DNA of 63,599 nt, filler included, from Reticulomyxa filosa (lineage: Eukaryota > Protista > Foraminifera): assembly GCA_000512085.1 (NCBI GenBank). It is 28 parts of 28 records of this genome, joined end to end, with 100 filler letters (N's around TTAATTAATTAA, not from the genome) between each part and the next. Parts side by side here need not be neighbours in the genome. Positions count along the whole stretch, not along the records: positions 24,014 to 26,824 come from ASPP01024653.1; 27 more parts are not named here. One strand, 5' to 3'. Positions within the stretch are counted from its first letter, which is position 1, and each line of letters starts with the position of its first letter. This document shows, piece after piece, positions 24,014 to 26,824 of the stretch. A program made the translations under genes and the position numbers. The notes under the pieces were generated by a model. That model had not been told where the DNA came from and did not search any database. It saw only the letters and a list, made by a program, of their open reading frames with translations.

Positions 24014-25782
24014 TTTTCCTTGAATTATCATAATTTTTTTTTGATAAAATTTTTCTTCTTCTTCTTCTAAAAATTCAATAATATGTTTTTCACAATCAAA
24101 TATTTCTTGCTTTTTATTATCATTACCATCTATATATAAATGATTATTTGCTTGTAATGGAATATATGTTTTAAGTGCTTGTAAAATATTAATATCTTCT
24201 TCTATTTCTTTTTTTCTTGATTCTTGTAATAATAATGCAAAATCAGCACAACTTGCTATATTTTTAATTCCAATTATATATTTTTCATAATATTCATATA
24301 AAATTACATAAATAGCTTTTCCTTTTTCTTTATTTGGTTTAAAATTACAAAGTTGTTCATATACAAATTGTATAATTTTTAAAAATATATTATTATTAAT
24401 TTCTTCTTCATTTTTTTTAAATAATTGTGATGGTTTTAATATTCCAATATCTGAATGAGATTTATAACGATTTGCTAATCTTTGAATTTCTTTATCATCA
24501 ATCCATTCACAAATTATATCATTAATATTTTTTAATGTTTCATTACTTGCTTGTTTTAAATTATCTTCTTCTATATTTTTTGATTTCCATGCTCTAATAT
24601 GTTCATAAAATAAATGACTTAATTTAGGATTTTCAATTATAGTATATTCTTGTAATGTTGTAAATTTTTTTAATGTTAGCTTGCATTTCTATATAAACAT
24701 CATATTTTGGAACATATAATTTAATATTATGAAATCTATGATGTGTTTTTGATTGTTTTTCAAAAAAATCTTTATCTTCAGATACTATTAAATTAAATTT
24801 TTCTGCTTTTTTCATTACTTCTACAGCTGTTCTTAATTTAGTATCATTATCACATAAAATAGTAAATCTTCCAATATCAAATACTCGATTAAAATTATCA
24901 TCATAATCTATTTTAATTTTTTCTAATAAACGATTCATATCTTTTATTTTAGATGGTTTTGCTACAATAATTGAATATTGTTCTAATTCATTTACTAAAT
25001 TTATAATTTCATTACTTATCATTGCAGCTTCACTTCGATTAATTAAATCTTGTAAAGTTATTGCATGTTGAATAATTTTATTAGCTTTTAATTTATAGGA
25101 TAATTCTGATTCAAGTGAATAAGTACATTGATAATTATTATCATTTATATGTGCTAAACCATTACTTGCATATATGGAATGTTCTGAATTAAAAAACATA
25201 ACTTTTATAACTGATGTAACAGTTAGTTGTTCACAATCAGGACAATGATAAGATACCTTATTCGGAATAATTGAAATATCTTTAAATTCTTCATTTATCC
25301 ATACTAAAAGTTTTCCTTTTGAGGCTAAGCATGTTTCATTAGTACAATAACCTTGTAAATTTATTCCTGGTCCATATTCTCCAGTATATCCTGTATTTAC
25401 ATCTTTTTTTAATTTATCTGCGTTTTCTTCAACGTGTTTAATTTCTTCCATTTCCTTTTTTTTTTATTAAAAAAAATAAATAATTTAAATCTATGTTTTG
25501 GTATATATGTATATGTATATATGTGTATATGTATATATGTACAATGTATATATGTATATATACATTTTGTCGCAATAAATTCGAAACCATTTTTTCAATC
25601 ACCAAAGTTACATTGCCATTATTTTGTTCCATTTCTTTTTTTAATTCATTTTCATCTTCAATTTTATCACCAAATAATCTTATTAATGCTTCCATTTCTT
25701 TTTTATATTTATCTTGCTCAATCTTATTTTGTATTCCTTCTGAAAGCTTGTCATTTGATGTATCAATATCAAATTCTACCAT
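24014..25782 (-). CDS. Multidomain protein: helical UBA/CUE-like N-terminus + Cys-rich module + RelA/SpoT-like nucleotidyltransferase + probable start of a NACHT/STAND NTPase (3' truncated; frameshifts near 24676 and 24040)
   Basis: Exon 1 25782-25564, exon 2 from 25454. Motifs GPGINLQGYCTNETC...CPDC; KIKDMNRLLEKIKIDY, VFDIGRFTILC, KDFFEKQSKTHHRFHNIKL, YIEMQA. The shifted frame stays open for about 215 codons (SHLFYEHIR...YIPLQA) and the contig ends in IMIIQGK. Confidence 0.72.
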
Positions 25783-26277
25783 TTTTAATAAAATACAAGG
25801 ATTTTTACATTTAAAATAATTTTTATTGTATGTACGTGTCATATACTTCTCTTCCCCTTTTGTTTTAAAAAATCTATTTTGAATTAACTTTGATCAGTCT
25901 TTTCTGTCTTTGTAATTGAGTTCCATTCGACGCTCATATTCTCAAAAAACGTGAATAGTAAGTATCTTTGTAATTGTATTTTTTAAAAAAAACAAAGAAA
26001 ATGTCAAATCAGACACGTAGAATGTTTCAAATTAAACGATAACTTTTAAAAGTTTTTTAACAAAAGGGAATGAGAAAATAAATTATTTTATATCATTTAT
26101 AAGTAGTTTAACATTTTTTAAAAAAATTTACATATAATTATTACTATAATACTGCTGCTGAATCACTCAAAATGTGAGAAATTGGTACAATTAATAAACA
26201 TATCTAAGATCTTATCCCTCATTTCTATAAAACAAACTCTGTTTAACTCAGAAGTTTAAATTCCTTCCAATCTTCAA

Positions 26278-26824
26278 ATGACTTCTGAGTATATAACAAA
26301 TACTAATGAGCCTGGAAATGAGAACTCATCTCCACTTGTGGATGTGGCCTCATTGTTGAATCTTCCAAGCTTGAGTGAAAAGGATAAAAGGACAATATTG
26401 CAAGCCTTTGAACAATTACAACAACCAAAAGTTGTACTCATATCAATAGAAGAACACGAAAAAAAGAAAGAGTTGGAAAAGAAAAAGGAGGAAATAAAAC
26501 AAAAACAGGATGAATATGATAAATGGTTAAAGATATTAAAACAAAATAGTGAAGAAATAAAAAAGAAATTAATAAAACAATGGATGAACTTATTGCAAAT
26601 GTTAATCAAAAAAGATATGATTTGATTAATCATGTGGATAGTATTCTTTCTGAAAAAATGCGACAGTGTTCATTTCACGTTCAATTTTTGCAACATTCAC
26701 TCCAAAATTTTTCCAATGTTATCCTATTTTTTTTTTTTCTTAACATAGGAAAAAACAATTAATTTTTTTTTTTTTTTTTAAAAAGTACATTAAAGAAATT
26801 GAAAGTATGTGGAAGACAAATACA
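26278..26824 (+). CDS. Coiled-coil protein, 5' part (B-box-associated coiled-coil-like), one frameshift
   Basis: ORFs 26278-26625 and 26580-26762 join by a one-base shift; heptad pattern. Confidence 0.4.

Follow-up and report, generated by a model that had tools for sequence, protein, structure and literature searches.

A candidate NLR-like gene with an N-terminal RelA/SpoT-type synthetase domain, one of an expanded family in the foraminifer Reticulomyxa filosa

Results

The window analysed here is a stretch of 63,599 nucleotides (nt), filler included, joined from 28 parts of the genome assembly GCA_000512085.1 of Reticulomyxa filosa, a naked freshwater foraminifer (Rhizaria). Positions 24014-26824 match contig ASPP01024653.1 over its whole length of 2,811 bp without a single difference. 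The GC content is 22.7%; the neighbouring genes beside which the original reading called the region AT-rich belong to unrelated pieces. An earlier reading of this DNA (the original prediction) had proposed an NLR-like receptor gene with a RelA/SpoT-like effector in a rhizarian-like eukaryote, and the host is indeed a rhizarian. We found one NLR-like gene on the minus strand of the contig, which stops at IMIIQGK. Our preferred interpretation, to which we assign a probability of about 0.75, is that this strand encodes the N-terminal ~560 residues of a STAND/NLR-like protein, that the protein belongs to a lineage-specific family of at least 50 synthetase-bearing copies, and that it would act as a receptor-activated pyrophosphokinase. 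The organism, the gene structure, the order of the domains, the fold, the conserved catalytic residues and the expansion of the family were established by the analysis itself.

Gene structure and the frame break

An open reading frame (ORF) of 272 amino acids (aa) is found on the minus strand at 24633-25451. It codes for a Cys-rich module (CTNETC at residues 36-41, CPDC at residues 70-73) followed by KIKDMNRLLEK (168-178), FDIGRFTILC (191-200), KDFF..THHRFHNIKL (227-245) and YIEMQA (253-258). A second frame, which lacks a start codon, runs open from 24688 as far as the contig end at 24014, a length of 225 codons; it includes SHLFYEHIR and YIPLQA and ends in IMIIQGK. All of the motifs quoted in the original prediction were thus recovered on this strand, in the order given there, and the start-less frame, put at about 215 codons, was slightly longer. 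With a stop probability of 0.108 per codon, the probability that 225 codons stay open is ~7e-12, and the longest open stretch observed (273 codons) compares with a maximum of 115 in 1000 shuffles. Therefore, chance is no explanation of the open frames.

The helical N-terminus that had been claimed for the protein is present, but it is encoded by a separate exon (exon 1, 25564-25782), set off from the rest by an intron of 109 nt. Exon 1, for which an alternative upstream ATG exists at 25842, is homologous to the N-termini of ~20 paralogs, as detected by blastx. The intron joins ..LLRQN to EMEEIK.., two segments that lie in different frames, and paralog proteins hold both modules in one chain; the 109-nt intron, GT..AG and in phase 0, resolves the frame difference. 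At 25490-25562 (minus strand) it consists mostly of an imperfect TA/CA-rich, microsatellite-like stretch (TATATACATATA...). GenBank carries a 552-aa gene model on the minus strand at 24067-25937, with no Pfam match on record, which spans the frame break and begins upstream of the ATG that we favour (25782). Presumably, this model bridges the break by an artificial intron.

The closest paralog is located at 1469-4880 of contig ASPP01002404.1 (locus L001), where the annotation divides it into two genes, P0005 and P0102. The exon and the frame pieces of the contig under study were searched separately and unjoined (25564-25782, 24636-25451 and 24014-24688), and the intact paralog P0005 served for the fold across the frame junction. 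The features of the gene, in the direction of transcription, are as follows:

25564-25782, minus strand: exon 1, a small helical domain, possibly CUE/UBA-like, with the motif KEMEALIRLFGD..ENELKKEMEQNNGNVTLVIEKM (blastx to paralog N-termini).
25455-25563, minus strand: spliceosomal intron, 109 nt, GT..AG, phase 0 (splice-site scan and frame arithmetic).
25074-25394, minus strand: four-Cys all-beta module (AlphaFold, conservation).
24678-25061, minus strand: RelA/SpoT-type synthetase (toxSYNTH) domain, first part (Pfam PF04607, VIA structure matches, alignments to Tas1 and YwaC).
24676-24678, minus strand: frame break, one surplus base (frames compared with the family consensus and with the paralog DNA of L001).
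24500-24676, minus strand: synthetase domain, second part, in frame +1, TLKKFTTLQEY... and then the LSHLFYEHIR helix (model of paralog P0005; HMMER alignment to Tas1 402-430).
24035-24499, minus strand: helical linker of ~150 aa between the synthetase and the nucleoside triphosphatase (NTPase), ending in YIPLQA and an acidic stretch (AlphaFold model of P0005).
24014-24034, minus strand: IMIIQGK, first strand and beginning of the NACHT Walker A motif, which the contig end truncates (continuation in paralogs).

The frame changes at GCT-A-ACA (24680-24674): frame 0 ends in ..YIEMQA, with GCT at 24680-24678, and frame +1 continues as TLKKFTTL, with ACA from 24676. The family consensus across the break is EMQATLKxFTTL, and the paralog DNA reads GCA ACA TTA AAG. 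Since the junction of the two frames reproduces this consensus, the surplus base sits at 24676-24678, exactly where the original prediction, in dropping one base near 24676, had placed it. Which base is the surplus one is ambiguous within a few bases, because a run of seven A residues (A7, 24671-24665) follows. A surplus base inside the A7 run (24665-24671) was also considered and dropped, as the consensus and the paralog DNA fit 24676-24678 better. The two frame pieces are collinear in more than 10 paralog proteins, in which homology passes from residue 258 (..EMQA) of the first piece to residue 5 of the second.

The surplus base could be real, in which case the locus would be a dead pseudogene that makes no complete synthetase or receptor, and the family alone would be functional. 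The sequence past the break argues against this: it is open for ~218 codons (P ~1e-11 at the stop probability given above), the catalytic and structural motifs that it carries are all intact, and the ratio of non-synonymous to synonymous substitution rates (dN/dS) relative to the L001 paralog is 0.36, compared with 0.12 before the break. Moreover, the A7 run starts 5 bases from the break, and we take the R. filosa assembly to be a fragmented draft that includes pyrosequencing data, in which single-base insertions and deletions beside A-runs are common. Conversely, under the consensus TLK reading the break is an AA dinucleotide (24676-24677), outside any long homopolymer; the Walker A motif is scrambled in P0001 (IIQGNQDQ); and decayed copies are usually many in large young families. 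In L001 the reading itself changes among at least three frames, the shifts falling within the four-Cys module and in acidic stretches rich in A and G, so that either pseudogenes are common in the family or single-base assembly errors are frequent. Taken together, we give a pseudogene somewhat less than an even chance.

The synthetase domain

A profile built from 27 family sequences matched Tas1 (PDB 6OX6; E 1.7e-9) and YwaC/RelP (E 0.0026) in the PDB. These were the sole matches at E <0.01, and CapRel was not reached. Tas1, also named Apk1, is a (p)ppApp synthetase toxin of the type VI secretion system of Pseudomonas aeruginosa, secreted in interbacterial competition and accompanied by an immunity protein. 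Pfam searches matched the RelA_SpoT family (PF04607) in 13 of the 29 family members, with a best E of 1.3e-5.

The AlphaFold model of the 272-aa ORF has a predicted local distance difference test (pLDDT) score of 86. Residues 131-267 of this model superimposed (VIA) on YwaC with a Z of 11.8 and on Tas1 with a Z of 11.5 at a root-mean-square deviation of 2.4, the values across YwaC, Tas1, RelQ and RelP being 11.2-11.8; Rel and CapRel were also matched, and unrelated nucleotidyltransferases reached a Z of at most 7.7. Among the paralogs that read unbroken through this point, P0005 is the closest (75% identical to the sequence studied here); it was modelled with a pLDDT of 87.7. Tas1 was its top Foldseek match (E 5.5e-7), and its residues 47-233 superimposed on YwaC (Z 13.6) and Tas1 (Z 12.7), within a range of 12.1-13.6 for the synthetases. 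In the AlphaFold models as a whole, the alarmone synthetases gave Z values of 11.5-13.6, whereas other nucleotidyltransferases remained at or below 7.8. As P0005 residues 47-233 align to YwaC and Tas1 across the junction, the synthetase domain spans the break in our contig. The nucleotidyltransferase fold of RelA/SpoT type that had been proposed from motif order is therefore borne out, by the Tas1 profile match and by the models of both the contig ORF and the intact paralog.

The residues expected at the active site are present. The basic motif of the donor site, K168-x-K170-x3-R174-x3-K178, aligns with PIKSRERAMQK of Tas1, and D192 (FDIGR) aligns with KDLAR, which holds the catalytic, Mg-binding Asp. 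E255-x-Q257 aligns with EIQ (GEIQ) of Tas1 and LSHLFYEHIR, the H..YE..R motif, with GHKYYEDWR. The donor motif also has the spacing of that of FaRel2, R64-x-K66-x3-S70-x3-K74, an enzyme in which D90 is catalytic (PMC11782079). Among ~50 copies that are otherwise 31-75% identical, FD[IV]GRFTI, [VI]Y[VI]EMQA and LSH..YE..R are almost invariant. These alignments and models support the view that the domain has a RelA/SpoT-type fold, like that of Tas1 and the small alarmone synthetases, with conserved catalytic residues. By sequence profile, the solved protein nearest to the domain is Tas1, an ATP-consuming toxin, and not a (p)ppGpp synthetase, the product of the domain itself being a prediction. 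A more distant relative is the C-terminal RelA_SpoT domain of a 2115-aa MuF polymorphic toxin of bacterial type (P0084). A housekeeping RSH enzyme was rejected, as hydrolase and TGS domains are absent and the synthetase is joined to NACHT.

The acceptor loop departs from that of known enzymes. T236-H237-H238 aligns with N-G-Y of YwaC, in keeping with the earlier claim that the GY motif is replaced by HH, and also with GY of P0086, which itself aligns with LGY of Tas1. Among the family copies, His-His was found in ~40, His-Tyr in ~9, and His-Phe and Tyr-Tyr in one each. The Gly-Tyr pair is thus not retained: the Gly is lost and an aromatic or imidazole side chain is kept. The Tyr is conserved in alarmone synthetases and stacks on the acceptor base (PMC11782079). 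Plausibly, the His is a stacking replacement for it.

The other N-terminal modules and the linker

Residues ~20-126 of the 272-aa ORF form an all-beta module, with block-mean pLDDT values above 90 over residues 21-130. G29, C36, C41, W51, C70, C73, N88 and E90 are at least 90% conserved, and the four-Cys module probably binds Zn. No family could be assigned to it: Pfam gave faint Zn-ribbon matches only, the sole match in a structure search was to a generic beta-sandwich (Z 5.4), and a length-limited protein search, which says little, was empty. As a lead only, its Atlas features point to eukaryotic (rotifer-labelled) clusters.

The region encoded by exon 1 matched the Pfam CUE family in 6 of the 17 members examined (best E 3e-4), although the exon of our contig did not. 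A profile of this region matched the UBA-like domain of USP25 at E 0.023, a weak hit, and the exon-1 alignment has an invariant GN. Possibly, then, exon 1 encodes a CUE/UBA-like helical domain. The linker that follows the synthetase is conserved in all of the paralogs and is modelled by AlphaFold as helices at P0005 residues 210-345. It returned only matches to Dps-like four-helix bundles (Z 6-7), values that are not significant for helical bundles.

The NACHT-WD40 family of R. filosa

Partial paralogs that overlap the end of our contig continue as (I/T)(I/L)QGKSGSGKS, a Walker A motif, and further on as FILDGFDE, a Walker B motif. The Pfam NACHT family (PF05729) is matched in paralogs with E values down to 5e-11 (ETO21379.1). 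Full-length members, ETO36350.1 (1734 aa), ETO08206.1 (1368 aa) and ETO33612.1 (1081 aa), extend past the homologous region into a NACHT domain, pentapeptide repeats and 9-14 WD40 repeats. The STAND/NACHT NTPase that the original prediction had placed after IIQGK is thus found in collinear paralogs, with GKSGSGKS, Walker B, NACHT and WD40, though not on the contig itself; the case that would have told against the prediction, paralogs without such an NTPase, did not arise. The order in the family is CUE/UBA-like domain, four-Cys beta module, synthetase, helical linker, NACHT, pentapeptide repeats and two WD40 propellers. The WD40 units of ETO36350.1 are exactly 42 aa long and 61% mutually identical, with variation concentrated at few positions, a pattern that resembles that of fungal NWD/HET-E-type sensors (PMC4986451).

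Counting distinct ExQ strands among the fetched proteins gave ~52, so that the copy number is at least of this order. With local profiles of the three N-terminal modules, the same head was detected, wherever an N-terminus was present, in the R. filosa relatives found via the NACHT region. Judged from these profiles, the family is one architecture that has expanded, not a shuffled repertoire. Two variants were seen: P0093 (RFI_08856) has two tandem units of beta module and synthetase before one NACHT, and in P0039 (ETO26992.1) such a unit is preceded by ~580 aa of unrelated N-terminal sequence, for which the annotation is 'vcbs repeat-containing'.

Nearly all of the relatives belong to R. filosa, and a few are environmental. 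P0046, P0025, P0064 and P0081, which are 31-46% identical, come from ENA and JGI metagenomes and from a whole-genome shotgun record with the prefix AAFX01, which we take to be a soil metagenome. The family is probably present in other, unsequenced foraminifera or related protists. The nearest non-foraminiferal relatives of the NACHT region (P0120, P0121 and P0122) are an environmental protein and proteins of Candidatus Magnetobacterium bavaricum and Mortierella. P0121, from Candidatus Magnetobacterium bavaricum, is a NACHT-pentapeptide-WD40 protein with 31% identity, and this chassis may be of bacterial origin.

That the nearest named non-foraminiferal NACHT is bacterial, and that the enzyme domain has its distant relatives in bacteria or viruses, would suit a contaminating contig or a freshly transferred bacterial toxin gene. 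However, a GT..AG intron joins exons in different frames, the contig has 22.7% GC, other R. filosa contigs hold dozens of paralogs, the few other matches are environmental, and tblastn gave no match in phage records. We regard such an origin as extremely improbable; bacterial contamination was rejected on the intron and the many R. filosa paralogs.

A divergent gene lies ~500 bp upstream of the NLR-like gene, on the plus strand at 26278-26762. It has a GenBank-annotated ORF of 115 aa that encodes a Lys/Glu-rich coiled coil without a Pfam family, and the reading seems to go on in another frame (26580-26762, MDELIANVNQKRYDLINHVDSIL...), which suggests an intron or a second frame error.

Discussion

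Mechanism and alternatives

From these results we infer an enzyme activity, its product, the logic of its activation and a biological role. In the mechanism that we propose, the WD40 propellers would bind a non-self or danger ligand, the NACHT domain would swap its nucleotide and oligomerise, and the N-terminal pyrophosphokinases, once clustered, would be freed from inhibition. The enzyme would then move pyrophosphate from ATP to the 3'-OH of an acceptor. Going by the closest relative, the acceptor would most probably be an adenine nucleotide, giving a (p)ppApp-type product and an ATP drain, and less probably a guanine nucleotide or the CCA end of tRNA. The affected region of the syncytial cell might thereby be arrested or killed. 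By analogy with the NACHT-WD40 proteins of fungi and bacteria, oligomerisation of NACHT on binding of a WD40 ligand would be expected to switch on the enzyme, and a role in defence against infection or in fusion incompatibility of a syncytial organism is plausible.

Several observations weigh against this interpretation. PF04607 matched the ORF of our contig with 21.5 bits (E 2.9e-4), under the gathering score of 27; the piece that was scored is truncated by the frame break. The break would stop translation 14 codons past EMQA, inside the catalytic domain, and the contig itself holds no NACHT or WD40 sequence, only IMIIQGK. Because Gly-Tyr is changed to His-His, acceptor specificity, or even activity, may differ. 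PADLOC and NCBIfam searches returned nothing relevant, and a search for sequencing runs listed none. Lastly, the single fixed architecture is unlike the shuffled N-termini of fungal, plant and animal NLRs and would suit a non-immune role equally.

The family might indeed be made up of nucleotide-signalling or housekeeping STAND ATPases, concerned with the metabolism or cytoskeleton of the giant plasmodium, in which the synthetase would make a second messenger. Besides the absence of N-terminal domain shuffling, the CUE/UBA-like domain hints at ubiquitin-linked regulation. We know of nothing on foraminiferal immunity, and an incomplete literature search found no paper that links Reticulomyxa with NACHT. 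Yet it is toxins (Tas1 and the MuF polymorphic toxin P0084) that come nearest to the enzyme domain, copy number is high, and the WD40 units vary at few positions. In addition, fungal and bacterial NACHT-WD40 proteins that carry an enzymatic head are switches for death or defence (PMC4986451; 10.1101/2022.07.19.500537). On balance, we consider a non-immune family improbable.

As to the substrate, the synthetase could target translation in the manner of CapRel, FaRel2 and PhRel2, pyrophosphorylating the 3' CCA of tRNA and making no free nucleotide. CapRel matches the domain closely in structure (Z 10.5-12.0), the His-His loop departs from the nucleotide-making enzymes, and CCA ends are universal, so that the activity would work in a eukaryotic cytoplasm. 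A Zn-type module is also fused beside the synthetase, as is the Zn-finger-like domain by which CapRel is inhibited and senses (PMC11782079). However, the profile matches below E 0.01 were to a (p)ppApp maker (Tas1) and a (p)ppGpp maker (YwaC) and did not extend to CapRel, and the Tas1-like block KxxxRxxxKIxxDYxGD..xxDxxR is shared. A tRNA target seems to us rather unlikely.

The most far-reaching form of the receptor interpretation is a foraminiferal system of innate immunity or allorecognition, in which dozens of NACHT-WD40 receptors would fire one Tas1-like pyrophosphokinase, the His-His loop would give a substrate or product unseen in bacteria, and the four-Cys and CUE-like domains would serve as inhibitor and regulator, much as the pseudo-Zn-finger of CapRel. 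We offer it as speculation, and think it doubtful in this full form. If true, it would be the first alarmone-type suicide effector, ATP-draining or translation-blocking, to be shown acting inside a eukaryotic cell.

Comparison with known systems

RELA_SPOT-NACHT-WD40 proteins have been catalogued in fungi since 2014, for example in Gaeumannomyces graminis (Dyrka et al. 2014, PMC4986451). They share with the R. filosa family the domain order, the N-terminal enzymatic ('class 1') effector and WD40 repeats with internally similar units. The R. filosa family differs in its rhizarian host and in the added CUE/UBA-like, four-Cys beta and pentapeptide-repeat modules. Moreover, the fungal type accounts for less than 1% of a shuffled repertoire, whereas the R. 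filosa family has expanded as one fixed architecture. A whole-library search with the 272-aa query gave few matches outside R. filosa, none of them shown to be fungal.

Tas1 is the best profile match and ranks first in Foldseek; 171 of 194 residues could be aligned at a Z of 12.7. It has the K..R...K, DY.GD, D..R, E.Q and H..YE..R motifs in common with the R. filosa domain. Sequence identity is, however, 18-20%, and the loop is Gly-Tyr in Tas1 and His-His here. Tas1 is also a secreted toxin, whereas in R. filosa the domain forms the head of a STAND protein that is eukaryotic and intracellular. RelP/YwaC, RelQ, CapRel and FaRel2 have the same fold (Z 10.5-13.6), and CapRel likewise combines sensor and synthetase in a single chain. 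In contrast to the R. filosa proteins, these enzymes stand alone or belong to toxin-antitoxin systems, lack NACHT and WD40, and conserve the loop Tyr that is a His in most copies here. The Zn-type module beside the R. filosa synthetase is reminiscent of the pseudo-Zn-finger of CapRel, which inhibits and senses (PMC11782079).

Alarmone synthetases are among the effector domains of bacterial NACHT proteins (Kibby et al., bioRxiv 10.1101/2022.07.19.500537). The bNACHT antiphage proteins are likewise built around NACHT as the switch between sensor and effector, and the R. filosa chassis resembles the bacterial P0121 (31% identity); they are bacterial, whereas the R. filosa gene is eukaryotic and has an intron. 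No bacterial protein with the whole architecture was retrieved, and no scan of bacterial genomes for it was made. The papers that we found on RelA_SpoT and NACHT together, in the same incomplete literature search, were all fungal, and no biochemical characterisation of a eukaryotic RelA/SpoT-headed NLR-like protein was found in that literature. Apparently, the RelA/SpoT-NACHT-WD40 design has not yet been described in Rhizaria.

New here are the lineage, the affinity to Tas1, the His-His loop, the two extra N-terminal modules and the expansion of a single architecture. Beside fungi and bacteria, the logic of sensor, switch and synthetase thus appears in a third and very distant lineage, the Rhizaria, which lends support to the idea that, across life, STAND receptors have recurrently used toxin-type nucleotide pyrophosphokinases as executioner modules. 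Foraminifera, whose large syncytial cells undergo fusion, are of ecological importance, and the family would offer a first molecular handle on their non-self recognition. The domain is compact and well conserved, and is open to expression and assay, including its natural His-His and His-Tyr loop variants.

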